Both the position numbers and the translations under genes were made by a program. From Haliotis rufescens (Eukaryota), in the NCBI RefSeq assembly GCF_023055435.1, contig NW_025964372.1, forward strand, positions 46,438,001-46,502,000: a DNA stretch of 64,000 bases, read 5' to 3'. This document shows positions 1,204 to 60,061 of this stretch, one piece after another; within the stretch, counting starts at the first letter, position 1; each line of letters begins with the position of its first letter. A model generated the notes under the pieces. The model was not told the origin of the DNA. It was given only the letters and a program-made list of their open reading frames with translations, and did no database searches.

Positions 1204-2331
1204 TTATACACAAAACACCAATACGGACATCAGTGCCAGAAGCAGGAAGACCCCGAAAAAAACGTGGTCTGCGCGGCGGACCTTTGACGCAGACTTCACA
1301 TACGGACGTTCAGTGATTTTCGTGTTTACTTTGTCATGTTCCGTCTGTACATCCGTCTTGGGTTGACATAAGACGCCGTTATTGCGGACGTTGAGTGTGG
1401 CCATAGTGGTGATGATAGCCAGGCAGCTCTGACAGAGGATGAGGGTCAGGTACACAGACAGTCGACAAACGTCTCCAGACTTGGGGATCGAGTCATTGAC
1501 GAAGTTCATGAACACTGCATAGGACACAAATATTGAGATGAGGTAGGACATCTTCTCTCCGGAGTCAGCTGGTAAGAGGAACACACAGGCGTTGAGCAGA
1601 GAGAGAAGAGCCATAGGAAAGATGATACTAACTATATAGAACATGCTCTTGCGTTTCAAAAAGAACTCAAACGATACCAGACTTGATATCTGTTTCATTT
1701 GGACGTCTACGTACTTGGCAAGTATGTCAACCAACTCCCATTCACTGTTCTCAATAAAGAAAGAAGGTAATCCCGTAATAATAGAACCGGTTCTGTCAAC
1801 TCCAAGATCGAAAGTATTTACAGGCGTGAACAGGATGCTACATCGCTGCTGATCAAACGGGTACCGAGTGATGTCTATTTGACAACTGGTCTTTAAACTC
1901 TCAAGGAATTGAAGTGATGCAATTCCATTACTGGATATCTTTGGAGATTGTTTTGAAGTCAAGGTAGCGCTGTCGATACCGTTAGGGATGGCAATGGTCG
2001 GTATCCATACAAAGTTCTCAGAGACGGTCACTTCCGTAATATTATCATAATCAGTTTTGTTCCAAGCCAGATTTTGGTCGAGCCACGTCATACGGAAACC
2101 AGCACTGAAAGTGAATATCTGCTCGGCAGCATTGAGATTGGAGATGGACATCAGCAACATACTTATGTTGACCTGTTTGTCATCGGAGAGATCAACACTG
2201 ATGCCATAAGCATCAGTTTCCCCTTGGAGATATGCCTTCAGTCTTCCTAATGTCGACTCAGTGCTATCACAGGTACTGGCGATTAATAATATGACGACTA
2301 AGTTAAGGATTTTAGCCGGCATGTAAAACAT
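1204..2331 (-). CDS. Intronless Cys-loop ligand-gated ion channel subunit (divergent nAChR-like, non-alpha), type A copy 1, 375 aa
   Basis: Hydrophobic signal peptide; WLDQNLAWNKTDYDNI; VWIP; Cys-loop CQIDITRYPFDQQRC (C-x13-C); ENSEWEL; TM1 FYIVSIIFPMALLSLLNACVFLLP; ADSGEK then TM2; TM3; short loop; C-terminal TM4; single uninterrupted ORF. Confidence 0.95.
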   Translation of the reverse strand: MFYMPAKILNLVVILLIASTCDSTESTLGRLKAYLQGETDAYGISVDLSDDKQVNISMLLMSISNLNAAEQIFTFSAGFRMTWLDQNLAWNKTDYDNITEVTVSENFVWIPTIAIPNGIDSATLTSKQSPKISSNGIASLQFLESLKTSCQIDITRYPFDQQRCSILFTPVNTFDLGVDRTGSIITGLPSFFIENSEWELVDILAKYVDVQMKQISSLVSFEFFLKRKSMFYIVSIIFPMALLSLLNACVFLLPADSGEKMSYLISIFVSYAVFMNFVNDSIPKSGDVCRLSVYLTLILCQSCLAIITTMATLNVRNNGVLCQPKTDVQTEHDKVNTKITERPYVKSASKVRRADHVFFGVFLLLALMSVLVFCV

Positions 2332-2510
2332 GATTTCAGTGTTCAGTGGTGATGTTCCAAATGACAGATATTGTGAGGCAGGTGTTTATCCATTGATAAG
2401 TTTGCTTAAATTATCACAATGAACCTTTGAACTGGAATACGAGTCAACACGATTAAGCAATCAATAATGGAAGGCGCCTTGCGCACACCCATTAGTGAAA
2501 ATGTAAGTGC

Positions 2511-2516
2511 TTTATA
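2511..2516 (-). promoter_or_regulatory. Candidate TATA box upstream of type A genes
   Basis: TATAAA on the minus strand ~180 bp upstream of the ATG, kept in all A-type upstream regions; the B-type homologous site reads TATGAA. Confidence 0.3.
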
Positions 2517-4432
2517 AACAGATTAATATTAATGATTCTATAGTAAAACTTGTCCCCACCTTCATTGGACAAAGCTGCAGTTACGCACAAATAATGGAGG
2601 TGTTAATGACAACAGATTGCCGTGGAAAAAATCTTTTATTAAATGCTCAGTAATCAGTGTTTCCAAAGCACCAATAATATACTTTTTAGTGACAAGTACT
2701 GTATGTTTCTTTGCTTTGTGCAATATGAGTAGACCGGAAACATTTAAATGCGTCATGTCCCTGAAATGTATGTGCAACGTAAATACGCATTAATGTATTG
2801 CCAACGAATTGATTAATGCCATTGCCTGAGAATATATGTGGCATGCACTTCAATTTGTGCAAAGGAATTACACAGACAACGCTTTTAAATGAACCTGGTG
2901 CGACACGGACGTTACTACACTTACATACGATTAAATTTGAAATTAAAGCTGGGGTTAATACAGAGTGAGTGAGTAAGTTAACATTTAACGTAACATCGGC
3001 TATATTTCAGCCATGTTATGACGAGAAGTTATTTATTAAGTATACATATATTAAGACTAAATAAAAAACCTGTCATCGATGGACAGTAAATAACTAGAAT
3101 ATCACAGATTTATACTTAAGACTAGCTTACAACCATAAAAAGATATCACTATATTCCACAATACAATATGAAAAAGGGCTGTAGATCGCCAGCAACTGAA
3201 GGTAGATCACCATACCAGGGAATACCAGGTATCATAACTATTTGATAGTGATTCATTAAGAAACGCTCAAGATATAGTCGGAATTTTTCAATCGAATCTG
3301 CTTTATGCAGAGATTTCTATTGGATATTGAAAGCGTTTTGTCGCTTTATTTACAGTACCTTTGCTACCTGCATGGATCACAGCAAGATTTACATCATGCC
3401 TTCAGCGGCTGGCGTTTGTACGTAATGTTACACACAATTGAAATTACAAATATTCTACGCTTATAGGAATAGTAAGCAAAATATTCTTATGACACGAACA
3501 AACGTTATCCCCTCAGGGGAACAATAATTTGACACTACTTCAACTCCCTTTGAGGAAATACCCACTTACAAACTCAGATAGAAATTCATCATACCAATTT
3601 TAAAGGTCTTTTATTTCATACAAAACATATGATCAAAAAAAAAATATCCTTTATGGATGAAACCTTTAAATAGTTATCACTTGTGATGGAAAAATCCAAC
3701 ACAGTTAAGCAGGACATGCTTGATAGGGTGGTTCTCTCATCTTGGGTTAATAATCAGTGTGGTTTTATAATCACAAGAGGTGTTAGAGATTTGTTGAGTG
3801 CTGCTTTTGCATAGTTCGTTGAGGAAGAATTTTTAGCCACAGTTTAACCAAGTATTTTCGCAATATCAGATTTATCCGTTAGTTGTACATCCTCATTCTT
3901 GAAATGGTGGATGCTGGAATTAGAACTCTTACCTTGTATTTTTCTGAATCATGTTCAGTACATTAGACATGGTATGTTTATTTTAGACATGAGTTTGCCA
4001 AGACGTTGGCGTTTATTTAGAATATAGGTAGAAATAAAAAAAATGACGGTATTAAAATTATGGATCATGGGGATGGCAACGGAAATCGTTTTCAGCCATT
4101 TTCCGTGCCTTCCTTGCTTGTTTGTTTGAAGTCATTGTGGTTTACGGATGTGTGGAATTGCAGAGGACTTTGGAATACATTCATCAGCAATTTTGCAAAG
4201 TTCATCAGAGAGTATTCGGACATGATCAGGATCGTAACGGTTGATAAACAAATCAGGTGTTTGAGGACAGTATTCCAAACAAAGGCCACTTTGTCTTCAT
4301 AAAGTTCCATCGTGATCATAGAGGAACACCAGATGGGGTCAACGTTTTTAGAAAGGATGGAAAGTGGTCACTCGAAAAGAGGTCATCGTGGACTCATCAC
4401 TCAAATTCATTCAACAGATTACAGTCTGTAAT

Positions 4433-5137
4433 GGTTGGTTGGTTTGCTGTTTAACGCCACACTCAGCAATATTCCAGCTATATGACGGCGGTCTGTAATA
4501 ATCGAGTCTAGACTAGACAATCCAGTGATTAATATCATGAGTGAGAGAGTTGGGTTTAAGTCTGCTTTTAACATTATTCCAGTTATATCACGGTGTGTCA
4601 GCATAATTTGGGAGGAAAGCCCAACGTGATGCAGGTCTCGGACGTTTACCACTTCGTTGAAAGCCACGAGCACTGGTATGGTGCTGACAAACCTAGAAAC
4701 ATAATCGGGGCGAACCGGGATTCCAACAATCATAGGTTTCTGGCGTGGCCAAGGGACGCACCTCTGCGCAGCGAACCGCGACGCATTAGACGACTGGGCT
4801 ACTCGTGCCCCGAGTAATATCATGAGCATTGACCCACGCACTTTGGTGAGGTGAGGTGAAATGGGGTTTAACGTCGCGTCCAAGATTATTGCACTTATAT
4901 AGCGACATTCATGTGCGTGTGTGTGTGTTTGTGTGGCTGCTTGTACTAGTCCCGACTGATGCCGATTTATAGTGCTAGCTCACTGAGATACCATGCCACA
5001 GTTTAACATGAATACCCCACTCAGACACAGGATCTTGACTCCAAGCCGACCAGTCCTTGTTTTCGCCCCTTAATGCCGAGCGCCAGACAGGGTACCAACA
5101 AGTACTATCTTTTCACGTCTTTTAGAACCAAGTCATA
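4433..5137 (-). mobile_element. Nested SINE cluster (family 3 host containing family 2 at ~4540-4813 and family 4 at ~4844-5125)
   Basis: Paralogous to the better-preserved nest at 50345-51153. Confidence 0.8.
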
Positions 5138-5669
5138 GAGTCCGTAATGGTCAAATCAAGAAAAGAGTATGTACCTGTACCAGGATGTAACTATGTTTTA
5201 GAGTTATCGTTCAAAGGGAAAAAGCATTGTTGGAAATATACGTTTCTGGACTCGTCCCCTTACTGCTGGTATGATCACTACCCCATAGTGGATTATGTCC
5301 ATTCTAATCCCCCATTATGATACAGACCTTAGGAAGCTGGTCATATAGTGCTTGAAGATCATTTGGCTGAATATACGAAGATGGAGGAGTACAATGTATA
5401 TAGAGAACACAAAGTAAAGACAATAATGTGTAATGTTATTCAGAAAGCAACGGCTTTGAGAGGAGTATCGAAAGGAACAGGACTGTAAATGACACCTTGC
5501 TCACCAACACTGAAGAACCCCCAGTGGCCTTAACCACTGGAGGTGAAAAGAAATGATTGAAATTAAACTGCCTGATGTCGATTTGATCGGTATTTTTCAA
5601 GTCGGTTTTTTGAAGACATACAGCTGATGGTTTAAAATCTTGTTGGAGTTGGAGATCATTTTAATTTTG

Positions 5670-5923
5670 TCTAAGGCGCCGCGATTCGCTGTGCAGAGTT
5701 GCGTGATTGCCAGAAACCTATGATTGTGGGTTCGAATCCCGGTTCGCCCCGATTATGTTTCTAGGTTTGTCAGCACCATGCCCGTGCTCGTGGGTTTCAC
5801 TGAAGTGGTAAACGACTTAGACCTGCATCACTTCGGGCTTTCCTCCCACATTAAACTGACATGTCGCGATATAACTGGAATAGTGTTAAAAGCGGGGTTA
5901 AACCCAACTCACTCACTCACTCA
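5670..5923 (+). mobile_element. tRNA-derived SINE family 2 (5' end deleted)
   Basis: B-box GGTTCGAATCC and (ACTC)n tail; complete paralogue at 51699-51975. Confidence 0.85.
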
Positions 5924-6463
5924 CCCATTGTATGATTTGACTTGAGAAACTCATGGCTGCTCAACTCGGGATATAGAGCAGGAGGTACGCCCACTCCCAA
6001 GGACCTGTTGTGTGGGAGTGACGTCCATCTCCAGGGGCTCAAACGGATTTATGAACCTCAACAGATGTTCAACAGGAGAAGGCACCGCCAAGTGTTGGAG
6101 TGTCCTGGCTTTTCTCCTCATCTGCTTTTTAGCCTTTTTTGATAAATGGGCTTCAGCCTGAAATATTTCTATTTCGGTTACAGGGTTTGGTTCTGGTTCT
6201 AAGTGGTGATAATTGATCAGACGATATTGATTGAAAGTTTTGTTTGGGTGGCAGATGTCGGTATCATTGGAGAGTTTTGAGAAGCCTGAATGGTGTCATT
6301 GATGGTAATTTGGTCATTCTTCAACCAAGAGATAGAAGAGAGATGGTATTGTATGGAGACCATAGTTACTTTGGTAACTGAAACTGGTGAAGAAGAGACG
6401 ACAGCTGAATAGCTTTTAGAAGGTGTTAGGGAGGAAATGAGTAACTGTTTTGCCACGGTGTAA

Positions 6464-6626
6464 GAGTGAGTGAGTATGGTTTTACGCCGCTTTTAGCAAT
6501 ATTCCAGCAATATCACGACGGGGGCCACCAGAAATGGGCTTCACACATTGTACCCATGTCGGGAATCGAACCCGGGTCCTCGGCGTGACGAGCGAACGCT
6601 TTGTCCACTAGGCTACCCGGCCGCCC
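6464..6626 (-). mobile_element. tRNA-derived SINE family 1 (~160 bp)
   Basis: A-box TAGCCTAGTGG, B-box GGTTCGATTCC, tail GCTGGAATATTGCTAAAAGCGGCGTAAAAC(ACTC)n; paralogues at 30476-30640 and 40544-40708. Confidence 0.9.
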
Positions 6627-6696
6627 TCTTCTGGCAGATAACTTCATCAAGGTTATTATATAATATTTTGATAAAAAAATAGTTTGATATGATATG

Positions 6697-6950: not shown

Positions 6951-7199
6951 GCTTTTTTTGCAGATATTCGTGCTGAGAAACATACATTCGATTTCACAAC
7001 TTTTCAGATGAACATGACATGAATACGAACATTAAACGTTCGGTAGTACAATGGGATGAAGTAGGTGAAGGTGTAACTACATGCCAGGTGCCTTGCAAAT
7101 CAGAATGAGGAATACTCACAGAAGACAAATATCAGATATTTAATCAGTCGGAAACTCAAGAGAATCTCTTTGATATAGCTTCGGAAATATTTAAGAACA

Positions 7200-8730: not shown

Positions 8731-9806
8731 TACTGAACAACAGTGACATTGAATAAGATTTAATGCAAAGTTATGTTTTTAACCAAGTCTGAAACAATTT
8801 CGGTTTGCAACAGATAAAAGACTCCTGTAAGTGTTCAAATGGTTTCATTTGCCATACTGACTTCAGAAAATGCGTGATTTCATAACAAAAACATGAAATA
8901 GCCGGCCAGGGGATGACGTTCACGTTGTTTTGTTGATGAGAATCCTGAACAAGTCGAGAAATATGAGGCCGGGCGTTGTCATGACACAATGATTGACGTA
9001 GCGTTCACCTCGACGTCGGTACACTCGAATCCGTCCATCGCTGTGGCTGAGGTGAAAACGAGACTCGTCAGTGAATAGAACTTGTCCCCACTGCATTGCC
9101 GTCTAGCGTAGACGCTGTCTGCACCACTGTAGACGTGCTTGACGGTGGTTTCCTGTCGAAATGGGACGTCTGGCAGGTCTTCTGGCGACAATCCCTGCAC
9201 ATCTGCGACGATGAGGTACAATTTGTGAAGATATTCGTCGAAGGCCAGGGATGCTTCTTTCACTCACTGTTGCTGGCTGGAATCGATTCCGTAGGTGTGT
9301 TGTTCGAATCCAGTTGTCTTGTCGATTATTGGTTACGCGTGGCCTCCTACTCCGAGGATGGTCTCTGACTGCATTCGTCTGTTGCCAACGTTGCCATAAA
9401 CACCAAATGGTGTTTCTGTGGACGTTAAATTCTCTTGCAACATCACGTTGACTCGATCCTGCTTCAAGCATACCAATGGCTCACAGACGCTCATTTTCGG
9501 ACAGGCGTGGCGTTTCGTAATGTTGAATAATTGCGTAATCTGGTTGTTTTTCTGAGTGGTTGTTGTCAGCACGATGCTTAATAATGCATATGGAATCCCG
9601 TTAACGCACATCTATTTATACTCATTCTTGGGTAGTGAAATGCATGGGGCTTGCATAAAAGTCAACTTTTGCATGGAATGCATGCTTTTCTGTAGCAGTT
9701 GCGTTTTTGTGACTTGATTCCATACATGTACAACAATATTGAAAACCAAACTTGTTTGAAAAATACACTAAAATATTGGTGTCACAGGAACTTTTGTTGT
9801 TGAGTA
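8731..9806 (-). mobile_element. Tc1 (DD34E) transposon relic with internal deletions
   Basis: HTH (MLEAGSSQRDVAREFNVHRNTI), VLFTDESRF, HDNARPH; termini TACTGAACAACA...TGTTGTTGAGTA flanked by TA. Confidence 0.88.
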
Positions 9807-12710: not shown

Positions 12711-13820
12711 TTATACACAAAACACCAGCAGGGACATCAGTACCAGAAGCAGGAAGACCCCGAACAAAACGTGGTCCGAGCGGCGGACCTTTGACGGACG
12801 TTCAGTGCTTTTCGTATTTACGTTGTCGTGTTCTGGCTGTACATCTGTCTTGGCCTGAAATAGGTGACCGTTATTGCGGACGTTGAGTGTGGCCATGGTG
12901 GTGATGATAGCCAGGCAGCTCTGACAGAGGATGAGGGTCAGGTACACAGACAGTCGACACACGTCTCCAGACTTGGGGATCGAGTCATTGACGAAGTTCA
13001 TGAACACTGCATAGGACACAAATATTGAGATGAGGTAGGACATCTTCTCTCCGGAGTCAGCTGGTAGGAGGAACACACAGGCGTTGAGCAGAGAGAGAAG
13101 AGCCATAGGAAAGATGATACTAACTATATAGAACATGCTCTTGCGTTTCAAAAAGAACTCAAACGATACCAGACTTGATATCTGTTTCATTTGGACGTCT
13201 ACATTCTTGGCAAGTATGTCAACCAACTCCCATTCACTGTTCTCAATAAAGAAAGTAGGTAATCTCGTAATAATAGAGCCAGTGATATCAACCCCAAGAT
13301 TAAGGTCATTTACAGGCGCGAACAGGATGCTACATCGCTGCTGATCAAACGGGTACCGAGTGATGTCTATTTGACAACTAGTCTTGAAACTGTCAGTGAT
13401 TACAAGTACTGCTCTTCCATCACTAGAAAGTTCTGGAGATTGTATTGAAATAGGTACAATGCTGTCAATCCCGTTTGGGACAACCACCAAAGGTATCCAC
13501 ACAAACTTCTCAGAGATAGTCACAAGTTCAATGTCATCATAATCAGTTTTGTTCCAAGCCAGACCCGTGTCGAACCACGTCATGACGACCTCCGCACTGA
13601 AAGCGAATGTCTGTTTGGCTGCATTGAGACTGGAGATGGACATTGGCAAAATACTTATGTTAACCTGTATCTTATCGGAGATGATACTGATGCCATCATT
13701 AGCATTTTCCCCTTGGAGATATATCTTCAGTCTTCTTAATGTCAACTGGGTTCTATTGGAGACACTAGCTCCTGATGAGATGAAGAGCAATGACAGTGTT
13801 ATCGCGGACATGAAAAACAT
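12711..13820 (-). CDS. Intronless Cys-loop channel subunit, type B copy 1, 369 aa
   Basis: Same Cys-loop and TM1-TM4; divergent N-terminal half. Start placed at MFFMSAITL (13820), homologous to the type A start; the ORF track extends in frame to 13868. Confidence 0.93.
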   Translation of the reverse strand: MFFMSAITLSLLFISSGASVSNRTQLTLRRLKIYLQGENANDGISIISDKIQVNISILPMSISSLNAAKQTFAFSAEVVMTWFDTGLAWNKTDYDDIELVTISEKFVWIPLVVVPNGIDSIVPISIQSPELSSDGRAVLVITDSFKTSCQIDITRYPFDQQRCSILFAPVNDLNLGVDITGSIITRLPTFFIENSEWELVDILAKNVDVQMKQISSLVSFEFFLKRKSMFYIVSIIFPMALLSLLNACVFLLPADSGEKMSYLISIFVSYAVFMNFVNDSIPKSGDVCRLSVYLTLILCQSCLAIITTMATLNVRNNGHLFQAKTDVQPEHDNVNTKSTERPSKVRRSDHVLFGVFLLLVLMSLLVFCV

Positions 13821-14856: not shown

Positions 14857-16865
14857 GAGTGAGTGGGTTTAATCAAAGTCACGACGGCAATATTTCAGCC
14901 ATAATGTAACTTGAACAAGTTGAACAATATTTATAAAAACTATCGATGAAAGACCGTATAACAGCTAGTTGTCGAACATTAACATGTTATATTCATTATT
15001 GGGATACGAAAGGATATAAAATGGGGCTATTGATCACCAGCAACAAGGTTAAGGTCACCATACTAGGGACCAAGGGGACTTACATTTGTACGGTACCTCT
15101 GCTACCTGCATTGTTCCCCTGTAGGATTTACATCTTTCCCTTAGTTACCGGTGATTGTTGCAAGTTTAGGCAGAGATTAAAAATCAACAAATATTCTGCA
15201 TTTAAAATTGAGGTAGATATAAGTATACTTTGAAAGAGGTGGTCTCACACACCCTATCAAGGGACAATGATTTTTGACATGTTGCCAAGAAGGAGAAGAC
15301 AAAAGCCTGAAAGGAGAAAAAATATCTAATCAATGGTGGCTGCTGTAATGTGGGGTTTAATCCGTATGCCTGGTGGTGGGACCAACTTAGGCTTATTGTG
15401 AAAAGGTTATTCATAAAGCGGTTGAAAACACAGTTTGTATTCAGCATTTGATGGATTAGAATGTAATTTAGTAATGCATTGTAGCCATTATTTGATACGG
15501 CGTTGCTTCAATGAAGGCTCATCAGCTTCTACATATAGGCTGTTCACAGGAGATGTTCGGAATGTGTCAAGACACAGAAGTAGGCCCTGATGCTGAATCG
15601 AAACTAACTTTTGTAAATTGCTCTTACAGGCTCCACCATAAACGATGGAGCCATAATCTAATTTAGAGCGGATCAGAGACCTATACAAGCGGAGGAGGGT
15701 CGTCTGATCACCTCCCCACTTTGTATTGGCAACAACTTTCAACAAATCTAGAGCCTTCAGGCTTCTCGTTTTAAGATAATTAATATTCGACTTAAACGTC
15801 AAATGGTGATCGAAAATGAGACCCAGGAATTTGTCCCCTTTAACAACCTTGATAAGAGTGCCATGTTAAAAAGGTTCTGGATCTTTGTGGTGCTTGTATT
15901 TCCTAAAACATGAATACGATTGTTTTAGCTTTTGAAAACTTAAAACAATTTTTAGATTTTGTTGAGACAAAGCTGCAGCTGTCTCTCGATGGTATACATA
16001 TTTTTGAGCTGTTTAGTCATTTGTGTGGAGAGACAATGACTGGCACAGAAACGAGATGTTTGACAGCCAACAGCGTAGCTTATTGAGATGCTGATTTGCT
16101 TTCAATCAAGATACAGCCATGTGTCCTTTTCATTGTCCCAACATATCCAGCAATACCATAAATAGTTTTAGAAAGCGCAACTGCATTCAATTTCAAAGTT
16201 CCATCATCAGACGAAGAGATGACCAAAAATCGAGACCAAAATTCAGACATGTTTCTTGTAACAGAGTCATCATCAGATCAACTGTCATTTTAAGTTCGTT
16301 TGAGTTTTTGTTGGTGGAATCATGGTAAGTTTATAACAGTTCGCCATACCACCCACCAAGGAGTATCATAAAGACAATGCTTTGTGCTAGTGTGTCTCCA
16401 ACCAAAGATACTGGGATGGTATACTGAAGCAGAAATATTAAGACCAATCGATCCACCAGATTGGCCTGTAGGCCACCGCCTTCTGGGCATATTTTTACTC
16501 TCTGCATTTCTTCATTTACAGCCAACAGTTCCTGAAATACAAGTAACTGTTTGACCAAGACACAAATTATAAACAATTCAATGTAACTTTGTGAAAAATG
16601 AAATAGAATGCACAGGGCTTTGCATAACCAGCCGACTGATAGAATCCGGCCCATTCTACCACCCGTGTAGGTGAAGTCAAGGTCAATGTGGTGTATTGGG
16701 CAAAGGAACACTATTCCTGGAACCAGTGCTCTCAACCACCGGACTACCTTCCTCCATTGACACAGGGGCGCAACCCACGGCAAACAGGTTGCCCAATTCA
16801 GTCCCCTCCTACGACAAGCAATGGGGTTCTGAGGACACATTCTACCCCGGGTCCCCGGGTCCACA
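14857..16865 (-). mobile_element. Internally deleted I/Nimb LINE retaining both termini
   Basis: 5' UTR (16865-16325), ORF1 start (~16323), jump to RT C-terminus (KALDLLKVVANTKWGGDQTTLLRLYRSLIRSKLDYG), then 3' UTR and ACTC tail at 14857. Confidence 0.75.
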
Positions 16866-17169: not shown

Positions 17170-17865
17170 TTATAGTCCCAATAACAAAACCTGCCGGGAT
17201 CATACATATCCCGCAAATTACCGACCTATATCGTTGACCAGTTGCGTTTGCAAAATCATTGAATGAATGGTAAACAACAGATTAGTATGGTATTTGGAAA
17301 CCAACAATCTTATTACCAATATTCAATGTGGTTTCCGGAAAAACAGAAGTACAATTGATCATTTAGTACGATTTGAATGCTTTGGTAAAAATGCTGTAGT
17401 TAATAAACAACACATAGTATCAATATTCTTTGATCTGGAGAAAGCATACGATACTACCTGGAAGCATGACATTTTACATGATTTACATGATTTTGGTTTG
17501 AGAGGTCGTTTACCTCATTTTATATCACAATTTTTACCCTACAGGCAATTTCAAGTCTGTGTGGGTTCAAACCTGTCTGACCATTACAATCAGGATCAGG
17601 TTGTCCCACAAGGCAGTAACTTGTCTGTCACACTTTTCAGTATCAAGATAAATAGTCTTTGAAAAGTTTTAAGCGATTCAATAGATGGATCGCTGTTTGT
17701 GGATGATTTTAATATTTCTTGTCGGGGTAAAAACATGCATGCAATTGAGAAACAACTGCAATTGTGTCTGAACAAAATACATAAATGGTCGCTTGCCAAT
17801 GGCTTCAAATTCTCCAAAGATAAACTCATTGTATATATTTCGGCAGAAAATATAGACTGCATAAG
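17170..17865 (+). mobile_element. I/Nimb LINE reverse transcriptase core fragment
   Basis: YRPISLTS, QCGFRKNRSTIDHL, FFDLEKAYDTTW, VPQGSNLS, LFVDDF, with stops. Confidence 0.92.
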
Positions 17866-18812: not shown

Positions 18813-18868
18813 ACCTTATGGGAGATGTGAATGCTTTTTTCAAAGGTAAAAGTGACATTATATGGTAA

Positions 18869-24860: not shown

Positions 24861-26925
24861 CAGCGATGCCTCAGTTTAATGCCTCCAAAAATAGGCTATC
24901 TGGTTGTGTATTTGGCTCAAACATGGAGCGTATGGAACGTATTGAACGTATAACATAGAAATTGTGAAGGGTGCACCCCATACATCTTTCATATTTAGGC
25001 TCAGACATCTTCTGCAATCCTTTGCATATCCTGACAATGAAGCCCTTGAAATCAGCCAAATTATTAGTTCTACTACTACCTCAAGGATCTGAAAAATGTA
25101 TTTGTAGCTTTGGGAAACGTTCTGCGCAACATTCCGGCCACGTTATATGTATGCACGTTGTTTTTTGTCCTATATGTTTTACTCTTTATACAATTATTCC
25201 CCCATAGCCTTTCTTTGTTTGTATCGCGATTACTGCCCAGTGTCTGCTCTTTCCACAGATACCACACTGTTAAGGCTTTTGACATTGGTCTTGAAGCGTA
25301 AAGGGCTATTGATAAACAGTTACAAGTCACCAACATTACTTAAAGTTCCAAATGCCAACCAAACTAACCTTGCGTTACCGGCTGATTTTGGTCTTGGCGT
25401 TTGCGACGTTTTATTTCATCCCAGACAGGTTGCATGAGTGAGAGGTGAGTGAGTGAGAACAACAGGTGGACATGGCAGTACAGCAATGCTATGCTGCCTC
25501 AAAAAGTCACGAGCAACATGGGGATGGGCATTATCCTGCTGCAATGTGACATTTGCACAAAGGGTAGAAGGTACGCCATTCAAACTGCCAGTTTGTTATT
25601 CCATGAGTTGTTATGCATTGATTTTCTGCAAGCCATTGATTTTGCGTAAATAATTTTTACGGTTAAACAAAGGTGTTTCATAAGAAATCTCTGCTAAATG
25701 CAGGGACCATTGTTCAGTTCTGACGAGATCATGAGCATGTGCTTATGAATCACTATCAAATAATGATGATGCCAGGTATTCGCAAAAAGGTGAGCGTATC
25801 CTGCCCCGTCCATGGCACAGCTAGTCACAAATGCATGCAAAGGGAAGTCAATTGTTCACCTGGAAAACAGGGAACATGTGGAAAGCAAGATAGGGAATTG
25901 CATCTGACATCAATTTTGGCACCACACGACTATCATAAAGCGTTTTGAAAGCCTTGCCAAGGCCTAGAATGGTGTCACCTTGATCAAACAACATTTGAAG
26001 AGTCGTTGGACACACTTTGAAATCTTCATACACAGAGCATGCTTGATTGTACCTCAGACGTTGTCAAATGTAGACACAAAAGGGTGGAATGTCATAAAAG
26101 GAAATTTAACTTTCAATTCATCCCACTTAGACAGTATTTTGGACAGCTTTTTGTCACTCTGGATCTTTATGGATGTAACTAAACATGAAAGAGATGAGGC
26201 AGTTTCGCTGGTGTCCTTTGTTACCAGTGCATATGCGTAAATAAGTGGAAGTGAATTGGCTGTCTGACCGTTTTTGAAAGATCATATCCGATCATTATTC
26301 CATGTTTGATTTAAGAGACACAATGAAACGTGAGCGTGCCCCAGATGCTTAGAATGTTGTTCATGTTGTCAATCACTGGTTTGACTTGTCCAGACTAGAC
26401 TATTTACAGGACGTTTATAGTATAACTGGAATTATGCTGGTTGTGTGGTGAACAACAGTCCCTATTTCATCACGTCAATTCAATAATAAGGAATGCCGTA
26501 CATAGCTTTAATGTAACTTTCCAATAGAGGAACACAACATACTGACTATAAGCCCACGTGTCAAATAATAACATTGCAGTTAACAATAGAGTCTCACACA
26601 CATGACTGAAGAATCCCACATTTGAAAATCCAATTACACATTCAAAATTCAGGAATTGATATCCGGCCGAATTCCTTCCTATGCAACAAACAACACAGGG
26701 ACATCAGTGCCAGAAGCAGGAACAACCCGAAGAAAACGTGATGTGGGCGGCGGACGTCTGGGACAGACTTCACATGGAGACTTTCAGCGTTGTTCGTCTT
26801 AACATTGTCGTTCGCTGTACACCCGTCTGAAATAGGAAACCGTTATTGCGGACATTGAGTGTGGCCATGGTGGTGATGATAACACAGTGTGGGGTTCGGA
26901 CGTCGAGCTCCGGACGAGTTCCTTC

Positions 26926-28053
26926 TTACACACAAAACACCAGCAGGGACATCAGTGCCAGAAGCAGGAATACCCCGAACAAAACGTGGTCTGCGCGGCG
27001 GACCTTTGACGCAGACTTCACATACGAACGTTCAGTGATTTTCGTGTTTACGAGGTCGTGTTCTGGCTGTACAACTGTCTTGGTCTGAAATAGGTGACCG
27101 TTATTGCGGACGTTGAGTGTGGCCATGGTGGTGATGATAGCCAGGCAGCTCTGACAGAGGATGAGGGTCAGGTACACAGACAGTCCACACACGTCTCCAG
27201 ACTTGGGGATCGAGTCGTTGACGAAGTTCATGAACACTGCATAGGACACAAATATTGAGATGAGGTAGGACATCTTCTCTCCGGAGTCAGCTGGTAGGAG
27301 GAACACACAGGCGTTGAGCAGAGAGAGAAGAGCCATAGGAAAGATGATACTAACTATATAGAACATGCTCTTGCGTTTCAAAAAGAACTCAAACGATACC
27401 AGACTTGATATCTGTTTCATTTGGACGTCTACATTCTTGGCAAGTATGTCAACCAACTCCCATTCATTGTTCTCAATAAAGAAAGAAGGTAATCCTGTAA
27501 TAATAGAACCGGTGCTGGCAACTCCAAGATCGAAAGTATTTACAGGCGTGAACAGGATGCTACAACGCTGCTGATCAAACGGGTACCGAGTGATGTCTAT
27601 TTGACAACTGGTCTTTAAACTCTCAAGGAATTGAAGTGATGCAATTCCTTTACTGGATATCTTTGGAGATTGTTCTGAAGCCAAGGTAGCGCTGTCGATA
27701 CCGTTAGGGATAGCAATGGTCGGTATCCATACAAACTTCTCAGAGACGGTCACTTCCGTAATATTATCATAATCAGTTTTGTTCCAAGCCAGATTTGGGT
27801 CGAGCCACGTCATGCGGATACCAGCACTGAAAGTGAATATCTGCTCGGCAGCATTGAGATTGGAGATGGACATCAGCAACATACTTATGTTGACCTGTTT
27901 GTCATCGGAGAGATCAACACTGATGCCATAAGCATCAGTTTCCCCTTGGAGATATGCCTTCAGTCTTCCTAATGTCGACTCAGCGCTATCACATATACTG
28001 GCGATTGATACTATGACGACTAAGTTAAGGATTTTAGCCGGCATGTAAAACAT
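26926..28053 (-). CDS. Intronless Cys-loop channel subunit, type A copy 2, 375 aa
   Basis: Colinear paralogue of 1204-2331 with all motifs intact. Confidence 0.95.
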   Translation of the reverse strand: MFYMPAKILNLVVIVSIASICDSAESTLGRLKAYLQGETDAYGISVDLSDDKQVNISMLLMSISNLNAAEQIFTFSAGIRMTWLDPNLAWNKTDYDNITEVTVSEKFVWIPTIAIPNGIDSATLASEQSPKISSKGIASLQFLESLKTSCQIDITRYPFDQQRCSILFTPVNTFDLGVASTGSIITGLPSFFIENNEWELVDILAKNVDVQMKQISSLVSFEFFLKRKSMFYIVSIIFPMALLSLLNACVFLLPADSGEKMSYLISIFVSYAVFMNFVNDSIPKSGDVCGLSVYLTLILCQSCLAIITTMATLNVRNNGHLFQTKTVVQPEHDLVNTKITERSYVKSASKVRRADHVLFGVFLLLALMSLLVFCV

Positions 28054-32687: not shown

Positions 32688-33917
32688 TACTGAACAACAG
32701 TGACATTGAATAAGATTTAATGCAAAGTTATGTTTTTAACCAAGTCTGAAACAATTTCGGTTTGCAACAGATAAAAGACTCCTGTAAGTGTTCAAATGGT
32801 TTCATTTGCCATACTGACTTCAGAAAATGCGTGATTTCATAACAAAAACATGAACATGCCAAAATGTCAATTTACAAATCAATAGCTGTGCTGTGCTTTG
32901 GGATATCTGTCCATATCCGCTGTTCCTGGAGTGTCTGTGGAACACGTGGTTGACGTCGAAGGCGCCGATCCATCCCATCCGACATGTGCTCGGTTGGTGA
33001 GAGATCAGGGGAGCGAGCCGGCCAGGGGATGACGTTCACGTTGTTTTGTTGATGAGAATCCTGAACAAGTCGAGAAATATGAGGCCGGGCGTTGTCATGA
33101 CACAATGATTGACGTAGCGTTCACCTCGACGTCAGTACACTCGAATCCGTCCATCGCTGTGGCTGAGGTGAAAACGAGACTTGTCAGTGAATAGAACTTG
33201 TCCCCACTGCATTGCCGTCTAGCGTAGACGCTGTCTGCACCACTGTAGACGTGCTTGACGGTGGTTTCCTGTCGAAATGGGACGTCTGGCAGGTCTTCTG
33301 GCGACAATCCCTGCACATCTGCGACGACGACGTACAATTTGTGAAGATATTCGTCGAAGGCCAGGGCTGCTTCTTGCACTCACTGTTGCTGGCTGGAATC
33401 GATTTCGTAGGTGTGTTGTTCGAATCCAGTTGTCTTGTCGATTATTGGTTACGCGTGGCCTCCTACTCCGAGGATGGTCTCTGACTGCATTCGTCTGTTG
33501 CCATCGTTGCCATAAACACCAAATGGTGTTTCTGTGGACGTTACATTGTCTTGCAACATCACGTTGACTCGATCCTGCTTCAAGCATACCAATGGCTCGC
33601 AGACGCTCATTTTCGGACAGGCGTGGCGTTTCGTAATGTTGAATAATTGCGTAATCTGGTTGTTTTTCTGAGTGGTTGTTGTCAGCACGATGCTTAATAA
33701 TGCATATGGAATCCCGTTAACGCACATCTATTTATACCCATTCTTGGGTAGTGAAATGCATGGGGCTTGCATAAAAGTCAACTTTTGCATGGAATGCATG
33801 CTTTTCTGTAGCAGTTGCGTTTTTGTGACTTCCATACATGTACTACAATATTGAAAACCAAACTTGTTTGAAAAAACACTAAAATATTAGTGTCACAGGA
33901 ACTTTTGTTGTTGAGTA
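32688..33917 (-). mobile_element. Tc1 transposon relic (paralogous insertion)
   Basis: Same flanks as 8731-9806; retains WPARSPDLSPTEH. Confidence 0.88.
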
Positions 33918-36973: not shown

Positions 36974-38085
36974 TTATACACAAAACACCAGCAGGGACAT
37001 CAGTGCCAGAAGCAGGAAGACCCCGAACAAAACGTGGTCCGAGCGGCGGACCTTTGACGGACGTTCAGTGCTTTTGGGGTTTACGTTGTAGTGTTCTGGC
37101 TGTACATCTGTCTTGGTCTGAAATAGGTGACCGTTATTGCGGACGTTGAGTGTGGCCATGGTGGTGATGATAGCCAGGCAGCTCTGACAGAGGATGAGGG
37201 TCAGGTACACAGACAGTCGACAAACGTCTCCAGACTTGGGGATCGAGTCATTGACGAAGTTCATGAACACTGCATAGGACACAAATATTGAGATGAGGTA
37301 GGACATCTTCTCTCCGGAGTCAGCTGGTAGGAGGAACACACAGGCGTTGAGCAGAGAGAGAAGAGCCATAGGAAAGATGATACTAACTATATAGAACATG
37401 CTCTTGCGTTTCAAACATACTCAAACGATACCAGACTTGATATCTGTTTCATTTGGACGTCTACATTCTTGGCAAGTATGTCAACCAACTCCCATTCATT
37501 GTTCTCAATAAAGAAAGAAGGTAATCCTGTAATATTAGAACCGGTTCTGTCAACTCCAAGATCGAAAGTATTTACAGGCGTAAACAGGATGCTACATCGC
37601 TGCTGATCAAACGGGTACCGAGTGATGTCTATTTGACAACTGGTCTTGAAACTCTCAAGGAATTGAAGTGATGCAATTCCATTACTGGATATCTTTGGAG
37701 ATTGTTCTGAAGCCAAGGTAGCGCTGTCGATACCGTTAGGGATGGCAATGGTCGGTATCCATACAAACTTCTCAGAGATGGTCACTTCCGTAATATTATC
37801 ATAATCAGTTTTGTTCCAAGCCAGATTTGGGTCGAGCCACGTCATGCGGAAACCAGCACTGAAAGTGAATATCTGCTCGGCAGCATTGAGGTTGGAGATG
37901 GACATCAGCAACATACTTATGTTGACCTGTTTGTCATCGGAGAGATCAACACTGATGCCATAAGCATCAGTTTCCCCTTGGAGATATGCCTTCAGTCTTC
38001 CTAATGTCGACTCAGCGCTATCACATATACTGGCGATTGATACTATGACGACTAAGTTAAGGATTTTAGCCGGCATGTAAAACAT
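36974..38085 (-). pseudogene. Chimeric A(5')/B(3') Cys-loop gene with net -1 frameshift at the ECD/TM1 junction; encodes a 224-aa ECD-only ORF (37411-38085) plus a still-open TM1-TM4 frame (36974-37414)
   Basis: GAG TTC TTT TTG AAA of intact copies reads GAG TAT GTT TGA here. Length is 1112 nt versus 1113 expected. The C-terminus TERPSKVRRSDH and 3' flank are B-type. Confidence 0.9.
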
Positions 38086-42755: not shown

Positions 42756-43985
42756 TACTGAACAACAGTGACATTGAATAAGATTTAATGCAAAGTTATG
42801 TTTTTAACCAAGTCTGAAACAATTTCGGTTTGCAACAGATAAAAGACTCCTGTAAGTGTTCAAATGGTTTCATTTGCCATACTGACTTCAGAAAATGCGT
42901 GATTTCATAACAAAAACATGAACATGCCAAAATGTCAATTTACAAATCAATAGCTGTGCTGTGCTTTGGGATATCTGTCCATATCCGCTGTTCCTGGAGT
43001 GTCTGTGGAACACGTGGTTGACGTCGAAGGCGCCGATCCATCCCATCCGACATGTGCTCGGTTGGTGAGAGATCAGGGGAGCGAGCCGGCCAGGGGATGA
43101 CGTTCACGTTGTTTTGTTGATGAGAATCCTGAACAAGTCGAGAAATATGAGGCCGGGCGTTGTCATGACACAATGATTGACGTAGCGTTCACCTCGACGT
43201 CAGTACACTCGAATCCGTCCATCGCTGTGGCTGAGGTGAAAACGAGACTCGTCAGTGAATAGAACTTGTCCCCACTGCATTGCCGTCTAGCGTAGACGCT
43301 GTCTGCACCACTGTAGACGTGCTTGACGGTGGTTTCCTGTCGAAATGGGACGTCTGGCAGGTCTTCTGGCGACAATCCCTGCACATCTGCGACGACGACG
43401 TACAATTTGTGAAGATATTCGTCGAAGGCCAGGGATGCTTCTTGCACTCACTGTTGCTGGCTGGAATCGATTTCGTAGGTGTGTTGTTCGAATCCAGTTG
43501 TCTTGTCGATTATTGGTTACGCGTGGCCTCCTACTCCGAGGATGGTCTCTGACTGCATTCGTCTGTTGCCATCGTTGCCATAAACACCAAATGGTGTTTC
43601 TGTGGACGTTAAATTGTCTTGCAACATCACGTTGACTCGATCCTGCTTCAAGCATACCAATGGCTCGCAGACGCTCATTTTCGGACAGGCGTGGCGTTTC
43701 GTAATGTTGAATAATTGCGTAATCTGGTTGTTTTTCTGAGTGGTTGTTGTCAGCACGATGCTTAATAATGCATATGGAATCCCGTTAACGCACATCTATT
43801 TATACCCATTCTTGGGTAGTGAAATGCATGGGGCTTGCATAAAAGTCAACTTTTGCATGGAATGCATGCTTTTCTGTAGCAGTTGCGTTTTTGTGACTTC
43901 CATACATGTACTACAATATTGAAAACCAAACTTGTTTGAAAAAACACTAAAATATTAGTGTCACAGGAACTTTTGTTGTTGAGTA
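42756..43985 (-). mobile_element. Tc1 transposon relic (paralogous insertion)
   Basis: +10,068 copy of 32688-33917. Confidence 0.88.
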
Positions 43986-47041: not shown

Positions 47042-48153
47042 TTATACACAAAACACCAGCAGGGACATCAGTGCCAGAAGCAGGAAGACCCCGAACAAAA
47101 CGTGGTCCGAGCGGCGGACCTTTGACGGACGTTCAGTGCTTTTGGGGTTTACGTTGTAGTGTTCTGGCTGTACATCTGTCTTGGTCTGAAATAGGTGACC
47201 GTTATTGCGGACGTTGAGTGTGGCCATGGTGGTGATGATAGCCAGGCAGCTCTGACAGAGGATGAGGGTCAGGTACACAGACAGTCGACAAACGTCTCCA
47301 GACTTGGGGATCGAGTCATTGACGAAGTTCATGAACACTGCATAGGACACAAATATTGAGATGAGGTAGGACATCTTCTCTCCGGAGTCAGCTGGTAGGA
47401 GGAACACACAGGCGTTGAGCAGAGAGAGAAGAGCCATAGGAAAGATGATACTAACTATATAGAACATGCTCTTGCGTTTCAAACATACTCAAACGATACC
47501 AGACTTGATATCTGTTTCATTTGGACGTCTACATTCTTGGCAAGTATGTCAACCAACTCCCATTCATTGTTCTCAATAAAGAAAGAAGGTAATCCTGTAA
47601 TATTAGAACCGGTTCTGTCAACTCCAAGATCGAAAGTATTTACAGGCGTAAACAGGATGCTACATCGCTGCTGATCAAACGGGTACCGAGTGATGTCTAT
47701 TTGACAACTGGTCTTGAAACTCTCAAGGAATTGAAGTGATGCAATTCCATTACTGGATATCTTTGGAGATTGTTCTGAAGCCAAGGTAGCGCTGTCGATA
47801 CCGTTAGGGATGGCAATGGTCGGTATCCATACAAACTTCTCAGAGATGGTCACTTCCGTAATATTATCATAATCAGTTTTGTTCCAAGCCAGATTTGGGT
47901 CGAGCCACGTCATGCGGAAACCAGCACTGAAAGTGAATATCTGCTCGGCAGCATTGAGGTTGGAGATGGACATCAGCAACATACTTATGTTGACCTGTTT
48001 GTCATCGGAGAGATCAACACTGATGCCATAAGCATCAGTTTCCCCTTGGAGATATGCCTTCAGTCTTCCTAATGTCGACTCAGCGCTATCACATATACTG
48101 GCGATTGATACTATGACGACTAAGTTAAGGATTTTAGCCGGCATGTAAAACAT
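47042..48153 (-). pseudogene. Second copy of the frameshifted A/B chimera (224-aa ECD ORF 47479-48153; TM frame 47042-47482)
   Basis: Identical translations to 36974-38085, offset exactly 10,068 bp. Confidence 0.9.
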
Positions 48154-54470: not shown

Positions 54471-54475
54471 TGTCA

Positions 54476-54641
54476 GAGTGAGTGAGTGAGTTTGATTTTA
54501 CGCCGCTTTTAGCAATATTCCAGCAATATCACGACAGGGGACACCAGAAATTGGCTTCACACATTGTAACCATGTCGGGAATCGAACGCAGGTCCTCGGC
54601 GTGATGAGCCAACGCTTTAACCACTAGGCTACCCGGCCGCC
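54476..54641 (-). mobile_element. SINE family 1
   Basis: A and B boxes plus tail. Confidence 0.9.
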
Positions 54642-56420: not shown

Positions 56421-57659
56421 TACTGAACAACAGTGACACTGAATAATATTTAATGCAAAGTAATGTATTTTACCAAGTCTGAAACAATTTCGGTTTGCAA
56501 CAGAAAAAGACTCCTGTAAGTGTTCAAATGGCTTCATGTGCCATACTGACTTCAGAAAATGCGTGATTTCATAACAAAAACATGAACATGCCAAAATGTC
56601 AATTTACAAATCAATAGCTGTGCTGTGCTGTGGGATATCTGTCCATATCTGCTGTTCCTTGAGTGTCTGTGGAACACGTGGTTGACGTCGAAGGCGCCGA
56701 TCCATCTCATCCGACATGTGCTCGGTTGGTGAAAGATCAGGGGATAGAGCCGGCCAGGGGATGACATTCACGTTGTTTTGTTGACGAGAATCCTGAACAA
56801 GTCGACCAATATGAGGCCGGCCGTTTCTATGATACAATGATTGACGTAACGTTCACCTCGACGCCGGTACACAGGAATCCGTCCATCGCTGTGGCTGAGG
56901 TGAAAACGAGACTCGTCAGTGAATAGAACTTGTCCCCACTGCATGGCCATCTAGCGTAGACGCTGTCTGCACCACTGTAGACGTGCTTGACGGTGGTTTC
57001 CTGTCGAAAAGGGATGTCTGGTGGGTCTTCTGGCGACACTCCCTGCACATCTGCGGCGACGACGTACAATTTGTGAAGATATTCGTCGAAGGCCAGGGAT
57101 GATTCTTGCACTCACTGTTGCTGGCTGGAATCGATTTCGCAGGTGTGCTTTTCGAATCCAGCTGTCTTGTCGACTATTGGTTACGCGTGGCCTGCCACTC
57201 CGAGGATGGCCTCAGACTGCATTCGTCTGTTGCCAACGTTGCCATAAACACCAAATGGTGTTTCTGTGGACGTTACATTGTCTTGCAACATCACGTTGAC
57301 TCGATCCTGCTTTAAGCATGCCAATGGCCTGCAGACGCTCATTTTCGGACAGGCGTGGCATTTCGTAGTGTTGAATAATTGCGTAATCTGGTTGTTTTTC
57401 TGAGTGGATGTTGTCAGCACGATGCTTAATAATGCATATGGAATCCCGTTAACGCACATCTATTTATACCCATTCTTGGGTACTGAAATGCATAGGGATT
57501 GCATAAAAGTCAACTTTTGCATTGAATGCATGCTTTTCTGTAGCAGTTGCGTTTTTGTGACTGGATTCCATACATGTACTACAATATTGAAAACGAAACT
57601 TTACTTATTTGACAAATACACTAAATTATTGGTGTCACAGGAACTTTTGTTGTTGAGTA
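56421..57659 (-). mobile_element. Tc1 transposon relic (paralogous insertion)
   Basis: WGQVLFTDESRF and WPALSPDLSPTEH; same flanks. Confidence 0.88.
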
Positions 57660-58936
57660 TATAATATAAAGCAAAGGTGACACCTTAGAAAACATTTGGA
57701 TGGGAGGGAATAGCATTGAAACTAAAAAAGCACACGGGATAACTCTACCGGCAGTGAAACTTTATTTCTTTGAAATGGTGATCATTTGCGATTGTAATAG
57801 GCTGCAATATATCTATCCCACATTGAATTACAAATAAAAGCAACAATACTCATTCCATATCCGTAAAAAATCTCGCCAAAAAGCAGAGTCGATTGTACGA
57901 CTCTGACAAAACTACGATCACATGTTTATCAATCAATATCAAATAGTTAAAGTTAGTACAAGTGTTCGCAAAAGGTAAGCGTGTCAAATCAACTGTTCAT
58001 AAGAAAACACACAGGAACATAAAGAGAATTGCATCGGGCATCATGTTTATTCATTGATGCATCAAATTTGGAAATGTCCACATGAGACGTGATACAAATA
58101 AGAAGTACGAATAAATTTATTTGAAAAACAGATAGAACCAAAAGACATAGAAGAAAGAAAAGAGAATATTTGTATAAATGCTAAACGAGCTAAAGTAGTA
58201 GTCCTCTGGTTTTCTGTACTCTGAAAACATAGACCATCTAACGTTAACGTACATGCATCTCAAATTGGATAATCCAATAAATAGCCGGGATAGTTGCATG
58301 TTTCTACATTTATTTTCTCTTTTGATCACAAAGCCTACAGCTGGTACAAGAAAATCCGAAAACCAAATGTTTGGCCAAGAAAACATTAATCATTTGTGTG
58401 TTTTTTTATGTCATGGCGGATTTGGTTATTTACAGGTTGTAATGGTTTTGAATATTGATGACAGTACTGCTAATCAAACTCTCTAATTTCCCAAATCATT
58501 TTAAACAACATAGTACTGACTGCAAGCAGATGGTTCAGAAAGTCACACTGAAGGCAACAAGGGAGTCACACCAGCCTACATACATACCACTGATCACAGA
58601 GTGAATAATTACTGAAGGAATCGACGTGTCACATTAATTCACTGCAAATCCACGTTTGAAAAACTTGTTACAAAGGAGATATTCCCTAACACAGTGGGAG
58701 GATCGGATGTCGAGTTCCTTCTTACACCCAAATCACCAGTAGGGACATCAGTGCCAGAAGCACGGACGTCTGGGGCAGACTTCACATGCAGACTTTCAGC
58801 GTTGTTCGTCTTTACATTGTCGTTCGCTGGCTGTACATCCGTCTTTTTCTGAAATAGGAAACCGTTATTTCGGACATTGAGTGTGGCCGTGGTGGTGATG
58901 ATAATACAGTGGGGGATCGGACGTCGAAGTTCTTTC

Positions 58937-60061
58937 TTATACACAAAACACCAGCAGGGACACCAGTGCCAGAAGCAGGAAGACCACGAACAAAACGTGG
59001 TCTGCGCGGCGGACCTTTGACGCAGACTTCACATACGGACGTTCAGTGATTTTCGTGTTTCCGAGGTCGTGTTCTGGCTGTACATCTGTCTTGTTCCGAT
59101 ATAGGTGAATATTATTGCGGACGTTTAGTGTGGCCATAGTGGTGATGATAGCCAGGCAGCTCTGACAGAGGATAAGGGTCAGGTACACAGACAGTCGACA
59201 CACGTTTCCAGACTTGGGGATCGAGTTGTTGACGAAGTTCATGAACACTGCATAGGACACAAATATTGAGATGAGGTAGGACATCTTCTCTCCGGAGTCA
59301 GCTGGTAGGAGGAACACACAGGCGTTGAGCAGAGAGAGAAGAGCCATAGGAAAGATGATACTCACTATATAGAACATGCTCTTGCGTTTCAAATAGAACT
59401 CAAACGATGCAAGACTTGATATCTGTTCCATTTCGAAGTCTACCACCTTGGTGTGTATGTCAACCAACTCCCATTCACTGTTCTCAATAAAGAAAGAAGG
59501 TAATCTCGTAATAATAGAACCGGTTCTGTCAACCCCAAGATCGAAAGTATTCACAGGCGTGAACAGGATGCTACATCGCTGCTGATCAAACGGGTACCGA
59601 GTGATGTCTATTTGACAACTGGTCTTGAAACTGTCAGTGATTATAAGTACAGCTCTTCCATCACTGGAAAGTTCTGGAGATTGTATTGAACCAGGTACAA
59701 TGCTGTCAATCCCGTTTGAGACAACCACCAAAGGTATCCACACAAACTTCTTAGAGATAGTCACATGTTCAATGTCATCATAATCAGTTTTGTTCCAAGC
59801 CAGACCAGTGTCGAACCACGTCATGATGACCCCCGCACTGGAAGTGAATGTCTGTTTGGCTGCATTGAGGCTGGAGATGGACATTGGCAAAATACTTATG
59901 TTAACCTGTATCTCATCGGAGATGATACTAATGCCATCATTAGCAGTTTCCCCTTGGAGATATGTCTTCAGTCTTCTTAATGTCATCTGGGTTCTATTGG
60001 AGACACTAGCTCCTGATAAGATGAAGAGCAGTGACAGTGTTATCGCGGACATGAAAAACAT
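58937..60061 (-). CDS. Intronless Cys-loop channel subunit, type B copy 2, 374 aa
   Basis: B-type N-terminus, Cys-loop, GEK, TM1-TM4; distinct loop C (HTKVVDFEMEQ). The ORF track extends upstream in frame to 60097. Confidence 0.93.
   Translation of the reverse strand: MFFMSAITLSLLFILSGASVSNRTQMTLRRLKTYLQGETANDGISIISDEIQVNISILPMSISSLNAAKQTFTSSAGVIMTWFDTGLAWNKTDYDDIEHVTISKKFVWIPLVVVSNGIDSIVPGSIQSPELSSDGRAVLIITDSFKTSCQIDITRYPFDQQRCSILFTPVNTFDLGVDRTGSIITRLPSFFIENSEWELVDIHTKVVDFEMEQISSLASFEFYLKRKSMFYIVSIIFPMALLSLLNACVFLLPADSGEKMSYLISIFVSYAVFMNFVNNSIPKSGNVCRLSVYLTLILCQSCLAIITTMATLNVRNNIHLYRNKTDVQPEHDLGNTKITERPYVKSASKVRRADHVLFVVFLLLALVSLLVFCV

Follow-up and report, generated by a model that had tools for sequence, protein, structure and literature searches.

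Expansion of genes related to the nicotinic acetylcholine receptor (nAChR) is a known feature of molluscs. Jiao et al. (2019; PMC6896357) counted 11-120 intronless nAChR-like genes in individual molluscs and found the expansion to be smaller in gastropods, and a 2026 MolluscaGenes preprint (PMC13174522) distinguishes 15 molluscan clades, of which the divergent ones carry substitutions of ligand-binding residues. The preprint also describes a clade resembling the cephalopod chemotactile receptors (CRs) that reaches gastropods, explicitly raises an ionotropic chemosensory role in gastropods, and refers to cephalopod CRs as intronless (citing van Giesen 2020). The closest functional analogues are the cephalopod CRs (PMC11526382) and the orphan receptor Alpo4 (PMC10338036). 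Here we describe a 64,000-nt stretch of the Haliotis rufescens genome (hereafter the window; all coordinates are positions within it unless noted), which carries six copies of an nAChR-like gene, all on the minus strand. These genes probably encode paralogous subunits of predicted pentameric, cation-selective ligand-gated channels that descended from nicotinic receptors and lost the binding of acetylcholine (ACh).

Receptor genes, predicted pore and ligand pocket

A preceding sequence-only reading of the window had claimed six same-strand, single-exon receptor copies with a Cys-loop, a GEK motif and a very short loop between transmembrane (TM) helices M3 and M4, and the open reading frames (ORFs) and Pfam matches agree with this claim in number and place (Table 1). 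Every copy matched Neur_chan_LBD, the ligand-binding domain (LBD), with E-values of 1e-27 to 1e-30 and Neur_chan_memb at approximately 1e-11, far beyond chance. Four of the six copies are intact (369-375 aa), and their ORFs contain, in this order, a signal peptide, the Cys-loop (C-x13-C), M1-M3, an M3-M4 loop of approximately 35 aa, and M4. Since an intact ORF runs from signal peptide to M4 in one frame, the coding sequence (CDS) is a single exon, a statement that covers the coding sequence and not the untranslated regions. Among the 60 best sequence matches in PDB, the closest solved protein was 5-HT3A (4e-37), followed by nAChR alpha6, beta4, alpha4 and alpha7, while a search of ESM Atlas returned generic nAChR clusters only. 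The AF2 model of copy A1 (pLDDT 76) shows the fold of a pentameric ligand-gated ion channel (pLGIC) with helices M1-M4, and is similar to the muscle nAChR with Z 26.8 and to alpha7 with Z 26.5 (Foldseek, VIA). The presence of both domains, C-x13-C, four TM helices and this fold places the genes in the Cys-loop, or pLGIC, superfamily.

The pore carries the motif of cation selectivity, with Glu at position -1' (GEK) in all copies and Asp at 20', except for Asn in B2. Nearly all pLGICs have Leu as the gate residue at 9'. In the genes described here position 9' is Val, and position 16' is Asn. The products are thus predicted cation-channel subunits of nAChR origin, for which we infer pentamer assembly, channel function and ligand gating at a remodelled pocket.

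The residues of this pocket were assigned by alignment to fish alpha7 and 5-HT3A, in which the placement of loop C is uncertain. The five positions of the aromatic box (W55, Y93, W149, Y188 and Y195 of alpha7) are non-aromatic in all 12 intact paralogues of the array to which the six copies belong. The position of Trp55 in loop D is occupied by Gly (Glu in B1) and that of Tyr93 in loop A by Pro (Ser in B2), the Asp of the WxPD motif is replaced by Thr or Leu, and Val stands in place of Trp149 in loop B (LFTPVN). Loop C is 3 residues shorter, and lacks Tyr188, the Cys-Cys pair and Tyr195. The loss of every aromatic-cage position in loops A, B, C and D, together with a loop C shortened by about 3 residues, had been read by eye before and was reproduced in this alignment, in support of the description of the genes as intronless tandem nAChR derivatives without the ACh site. 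The aromatic box and the vicinal Cys pair, by which an ACh-gated nicotinic receptor is recognized in sequence, are both absent from the 12 intact paralogues; the aligned pocket positions hold Gly, Pro, Val, Met, Ser, Thr, Arg and similar small aliphatic or polar residues.

The copies differ in type and in integrity. B1 is 78% identical to A1, and B2 is a mosaic, in which the segment from loop B to loop F is A-like. The two broken copies, A3 and A4, share a net loss of 1 base at codon 223, upstream of M1, within a small complex change that is not a homopolymer slip, and both also carry a 15-base in-frame deletion of B type in the intracellular domain (ICD). The first ORF of each, which still spans the signal peptide and the entire extracellular domain (ECD), could encode a putative secreted protein resembling the acetylcholine-binding protein, or the two copies could simply be pseudogenes. 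Three relics, adjoining the stop codons of A1, A2 and B2, match receptor residues from about 306 to 374 (the end of M3, the ICD and M4), and look as if insertion of the present C-terminal module had pushed an older 3' end aside. Neither AATAAA nor ATTAAA was found within 1.2 kb downstream of A1, where approximately 1-2 would be expected by chance, so that this absence is not significant.

Table 1. Receptor copies, receptor fragments and the repeated unit in the 64,000-nt Haliotis rufescens window.
Feature	Position	Strand	Description
Relic receptor C-terminus	963-1169	-	directly downstream of A1; aligns with aa 306-374; tblastn 64% identity, E 4e-20
Copy A1	1204-2331	-	intact single-exon Cys-loop receptor ORF, 375 aa; Pfam LBD 1.8e-30, TM 5.5e-11
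Copy B1	12711-13820	-	intact, 369 aa from MFFMS start (probable, 13820); ORF reaches 13868
Relic C-terminal fragment	26723-26880	-	directly downstream of A2; tblastn
Copy A2	26926-28053	-	intact, 375 aa; 94% identity to A1
Tandem repeat of ~10,068-bp unit	26925-50168	.	gene plus Tc1/mariner remnant; three copies, starts 26925, 36973, 47041; self-BLAST 98.9% over 13.2 kb
Copy A3	36974-38085	-	broken, split into 224-aa and 146-aa ORFs
ECD-only ORF of A3	37411-38085	-	224 aa; signal peptide and complete ECD, ending just before M1
Copy A4	47042-48153	-	broken as A3, split into 224-aa and 146-aa ORFs; within near-identical 10,068-bp tandem unit
ECD-only ORF of A4	47479-48153	-	224 aa; signal peptide and complete ECD, ending just before M1
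Relic C-terminal fragment	58762-58902	-	directly downstream of B2; tblastn; ORF 58639-58944
Copy B2	58937-60061	-	intact, 374 aa from MFFMS start (probable, 60061); ORF reaches 60097

Array extent, phylogeny and mode of evolution

By a six-frame search of the whole H. rufescens genome, the array was found to consist of 14 loci on one strand over approximately 160 kb, 12 of them intact and six of them within the window. The same search located at least 109 mostly uninterrupted nAChR-like frames (of 369 candidates) in about 20 further tandem clusters. All 14 frames sampled from other clusters are 360-400 aa long, with a short intracellular loop and without the aromatic box, and carry Val or Met at 9', together with Asn (11 frames) or Val (3 frames) at 16'. 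With so many similar clusters genome-wide, the array in the window is one branch of a large superfamily, and not a singular locus. The sequence-only reading overstated the case in this respect: about 20 or more similar clusters exist in the genome, among them this array, RefSeq already names its genes "neuronal acetylcholine receptor subunit beta-4-like", "alpha-6-like" and "delta-like", and both the phenomenon and the idea of a chemosensory role in gastropods have been published (PMC6896357; PMC13174522). Further clusters lie on the same chromosome, among them a pair of intronless nAChR-like ORFs about 90 kb from the array (C594:46317937-46323081) and a group of about eight such ORFs 6 Mb away (C594:40.50-40.61 Mb), both with 29-35% identity to A1.

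The nearest proteins in the database are RefSeq models of H. cracherodii (94%), H. rufescens, H. rubra and H. asinina (65-80%), and the family is specific to Haliotis, with 65-94% identity across these four species. The proteins of the window share a 54.2-Mb contig with named H. rufescens proteins. Of 9,085 relatives collected by an exhaustive HMMER search, only two representatives exceed 50% identity and the next best reach at most 43%; the named relatives are gastropod proteins, from Gigantopelta, Bulinus, Physella, Aplysia, Candidula and Lymnaea and from other Haliotis arrays. In a tree of 75 sequences, from which cephalopod CR sequences were absent, the family forms a single group with support 100 and a long stem. 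This group falls within a clade made up of gastropods alone (support 100), apart from the alpha7, alpha10-like, delta and beta-like reference subunits. The family is thus no set of 1:1 orthologues of canonical non-alpha subunits, the position that the sequence-only reading had named as contrary to its proposal. The source, H. rufescens, is a gastropod, as that reading had guessed, and ORFs from other contigs of this genome stand in the tree at zero branch length from named H. rufescens proteins. With uninterrupted coding sequences, tandem order on one strand and paralogues that cluster by lineage, the family belongs to the intronless tandem expansion described by Jiao et al. (2019). The combination of 9' Val or Met with 16' Asn was also observed in the named relatives from Gigantopelta, Aplysia, Lymnaea, Physella, Bulinus and Candidula, and may mark the gastropod clade. 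In a tree of the ECD alone, A, C8, C9/C12, C10/C11 and C7 each pair with a H. cracherodii protein and deeper groups unite proteins of H. rubra and H. asinina, indicating that the subtypes are older than the split of the Haliotis species.

The family is still duplicating, as the sequence-only reading had proposed, and three observations support this conclusion. The ~10-kb unit is present three times in the window (Table 1), and the units of A3 and A4 are ~99.9-100% identical over ~9 kb. Pairs of paralogues reach 94-98% identity, and recent duplicates within H. rufescens include A0/A1/A2/A3/A4, B0/B1, C9/C12 and C10/C11. The A type has five members here, against one found for H. cracherodii. Conserved 122-aa ORFs on the minus strand at 9103-9471, 33219-33587 and 43287-43655 showed weak matches, below the Pfam cut-offs, to the helix-turn-helix domains of Tc1/mariner transposases (HTH_Tnp_Tc3_2 and HTH_23); these ORFs are part of the ~10-kb units and were duplicated together with the receptor genes.

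Divergence is distributed unevenly along the genes. Between subtypes, the rate of synonymous substitution (dS) in the ECD is 0.3-0.55 and the ratio of non-synonymous (dN) to synonymous rates (omega) 0.4-0.65, against a dS of 0.02-0.18 and a dN of ~0-0.02 for M1-M3. Sliding-window identity revealed sharp mosaic tracts between paralogues: A and B1 are 64-87% identical over codons 1-180 and 93-100% identical from there on, across loop C and M1-M3, while A1 and B2 reach 97-98% only over codons 151-180, and C7 and C10 reach 97-99% only over codons 61-105. These tracts, together with the B-type ICD deletion in A3 and A4 and the relics, show frequent gene conversion or unequal exchange, which homogenises the pore module and shuffles segments of the ECD. 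By region, omega was 1.16 for loop E, 0.91 for loop C, 0.44 for the non-loop ECD, 0.11 for the Cys-loop and 0.09 for M1-M3, values that are to be read with the caveat that pervasive gene conversion invalidates a single tree and distorts dS.

The low values bear on the proposal that the array is a decaying set of retrogene copies without present function. The frameshift in two of the six window copies, the relic C-terminal fragments beside three genes and the negligible RNA support (see below) would fit such decay, but full open frames are retained at 12 of the 14 loci, dN in the transmembrane domain is ~0, omega in the Cys-loop is 0.11 and orthologous subtypes have been kept in four Haliotis species, so that we regard this explanation as very improbable.

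For the pocket loops, clear orthologue pairs between H. rufescens and H. cracherodii are 95-100% identical over loops C and E, like the scaffold, whereas between subtypes these loops are 39-68% identical, against 70-77% for the scaffold; in pairs of H. rubra and H. asinina the loops diverge approximately 1.45 times faster than the scaffold (calculated from identity counts). Conservation in orthologues with divergence between subtypes points to pocket loops that are specific to each subtype and partly constrained. This pattern is also of importance for the possibility that the products are accessory, structural subunits, which, like vertebrate beta3 and alpha5, join canonical alpha subunits in ACh-gated heteromers without contributing a binding face. 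The RefSeq names beta-4-like, delta-like and alpha-6-like and the lack of the Cys-Cys pair, as in non-alpha subunits, agree with such a role, and omega of ~1 in loops C and E would suit an unused pocket. Residues of both the principal and the complementary face are lost, however, and the subtype-specific loops are preserved between species. Moreover, 9' Val and 16' Asn in M2, like the short ICD, are shared only with the divergent gastropod clade and do not occur in canonical subunits, a restriction that argues for assembly of the subunits among themselves. An accessory role is therefore considered unlikely.

Proposed role, expression and other elements of the window

For the family as predicted ion-channel subunits without the ACh site, the following course of evolution is proposed. 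The family would have its origin inside a clade that extends across the gastropods and consists of intronless receptors whose intracellular loop is short, and would have grown by tandem duplication of ~10-kb units, with loss of copies through frameshifts, in a process of birth and death. Gene conversion keeps the M1-M3 pore module near-identical among all paralogues, and such a uniform module should allow any of the subunits, which most likely assemble among themselves, to co-assemble and to gate alike. The ECD, above all the interface loops C and E, differs by subtype, and would thereby provide a set of pockets with different non-cholinergic specificities.

Environment-facing chemosensation is a candidate role for these pockets, put forward only tentatively and about as likely as an endogenous ligand other than ACh. 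In the latter case, the receptors would act inside the body, in neurons, in muscle or in another internal tissue, and respond to an endogenous transmitter or modulator, for example an amine, an amino acid, a betaine or a peptide. The pLGICs have repeatedly switched transmitter, in general agreement with this possibility. According to Jiao et al. (PMC6896357), the expanded molluscan nAChR-like genes show diverse developmental, immune and stress expression that is not specifically sensory. The pocket of the Haliotis genes, with its small aliphatic or polar residues, also differs from that of octopus CRT1, which is aromatic and hydrophobic (bioRxiv 10.1101/2025.03.03.641191). On the other hand, 14 fast-diverging paralogues in one genus exceed the usual needs of an endogenous transmitter system, and the intracellular loop of ~35 aa appears to lack the segment used by synaptic nAChRs for clustering, which would argue against synaptic anchoring. 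An endogenous ligand is thus possible, with a rather low probability. A comparably low probability is given to a wider proposal, in which the gastropod-wide clade of intronless, short-loop receptors (9' Val, 16' Asn), with at least 100 genes in abalone, might represent a candidate superfamily of ionotropic chemoreceptors, independent of the cephalopod CRs, that combines a uniform pore with shuffled binding loops for food, conspecific or larval-settlement cues; the array in the window would then be a genus-specific branch.

Several observations weigh against the reading of the family as functional ligand-gated channels. None of the sequencing runs on record as RNA holds the gene. In four runs of guessed RNA type, which were compared with the window at 80% likeness, no more than four contigs, of 177-257 bases and at depth 2-9, matched the CDS, most of them on the M1-M3 block common to all paralogues, and the unique flanks at 801-1200 and 2401-2800 gave essentially no contigs from these runs. 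Two of the six window copies are broken. Val at 9' and Asn at 16' are unusual, so that the gating behaviour is not predictable from sequence. For loops C and E, an omega of ~1 is as compatible with neutral drift of a defunct pocket as with diversifying selection. The related orphan Alpo4 gave no currents despite wide screening (PMC10338036). As to transcription of the receptor genes, the four contigs are a faint hint that carries no information on tissue or level, and literature searches found nothing specific on the expression of these genes in abalone.

Other elements were detected in the window outside the receptor genes. The regions at ~4400-5200 and 5600-6000 represent a very high-copy repeat, to which all four runs contributed contigs, tens of thousands in number, with a summed depth of at least 1e5 and many strand-switch joints. 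A reverse-transcriptase fragment (RVT_1, 6.6e-16) at 17267-17662 on the plus strand is a retroelement remnant between B1 and A2, and the nearby ORF at 15488-15802 on the minus strand had no Pfam match. ARAGORN called a tRNA-Asp with the unusual anticodon ATC at 54566-54638 on the minus strand, which was not confirmed by Rfam at the gathering score and is probably a tRNA-derived repeat or pseudogene; the search of the window against Rfam gave no match.

Comparison with known receptor systems

The vertebrate alpha7 nAChR and 5-HT3A, which provide the best matches in both sequence and fold, share with the Haliotis genes the Cys-loop, the GEK ring and the four-helix transmembrane domain. The Haliotis genes differ from them in the lost aromatic box, the shorter loop C, Val instead of Leu at 9', Asn at 16', an intracellular loop of ~35 aa against more than 100, and the lack of introns.

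The cephalopod CRs (CR518/CRT1 and CRB1; PDB 9e6b and 8eiz) are likewise nAChR-derived and expanded, with loss of the ACh residues, and they are cation channels with a diversifying pocket, features that recur here for channels that are only predicted. No specific kinship with the CRs was found in comparisons of structure and of PDB sequence matches. Structure-based identity was 23% to CRT1 and 19% to CRB1, against 21-25% to vertebrate nAChRs, and thus indicates no special closeness; no CR chain was among the 60 best PDB sequence matches. The pocket of CRT1 is aromatic and hydrophobic (Y58, W122, F124 and F192; bioRxiv 10.1101/2025.03.03.641191), whereas that of the Haliotis genes is aliphatic or polar, and thus differs, with the uncertainty of the loop C alignment, from the hydrophobic aromatic orthosteric pocket for poorly soluble ligands by which CRs are characterized. 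Sensory expression and ligands have been established for CRs, whereas the Haliotis genes were compared by sequence and fold alone.

Alpo4 of Alvinella pompejana (PDB 8bx5; PMC10338036) is, like the Haliotis genes, a lophotrochozoan nAChR-like protein without the Cys-Cys pair, and its fold is similar to the A1 model (Z 22.8, 20% identity). It is an orphan without response to ACh or 5-HT (PMC10338036). Unlike the Haliotis genes, Alpo4 keeps the key aromatics, has an intracellular domain of ~105 residues, and is encoded by an isolated gene and not by a tandem family.

The best agreement is with the expansions of Jiao et al. (2019) and MolluscaGenes, which consist of single-exon tandem genes with lineage-clustered paralogues and are already reported in gastropods. 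In the consulted passages of these sources, the Haliotis subfamily is not described beyond its automatic RefSeq names, nor do they contain the pore-restricted gene conversion and the ECD mosaic of the Haliotis family. Within the known molluscan expansion, the abalone family thus stands as a branch that is annotated but uncharacterised, and its most interesting trait of its own is the concerted evolution confined to the pore. This modular evolution shows plainly, in a natural setting, how a family of receptors built from several subunits may diversify specificity and keep assembly, with a uniform pore and binding loops that diverge and are exchanged. If the products are indeed sensors, the family would represent the second, independent case after cephalopods of neurotransmitter receptors turned into chemoreceptors, and would provide candidates for the still unidentified receptors of feeding and larval-settlement cues in a farmed and endangered group.

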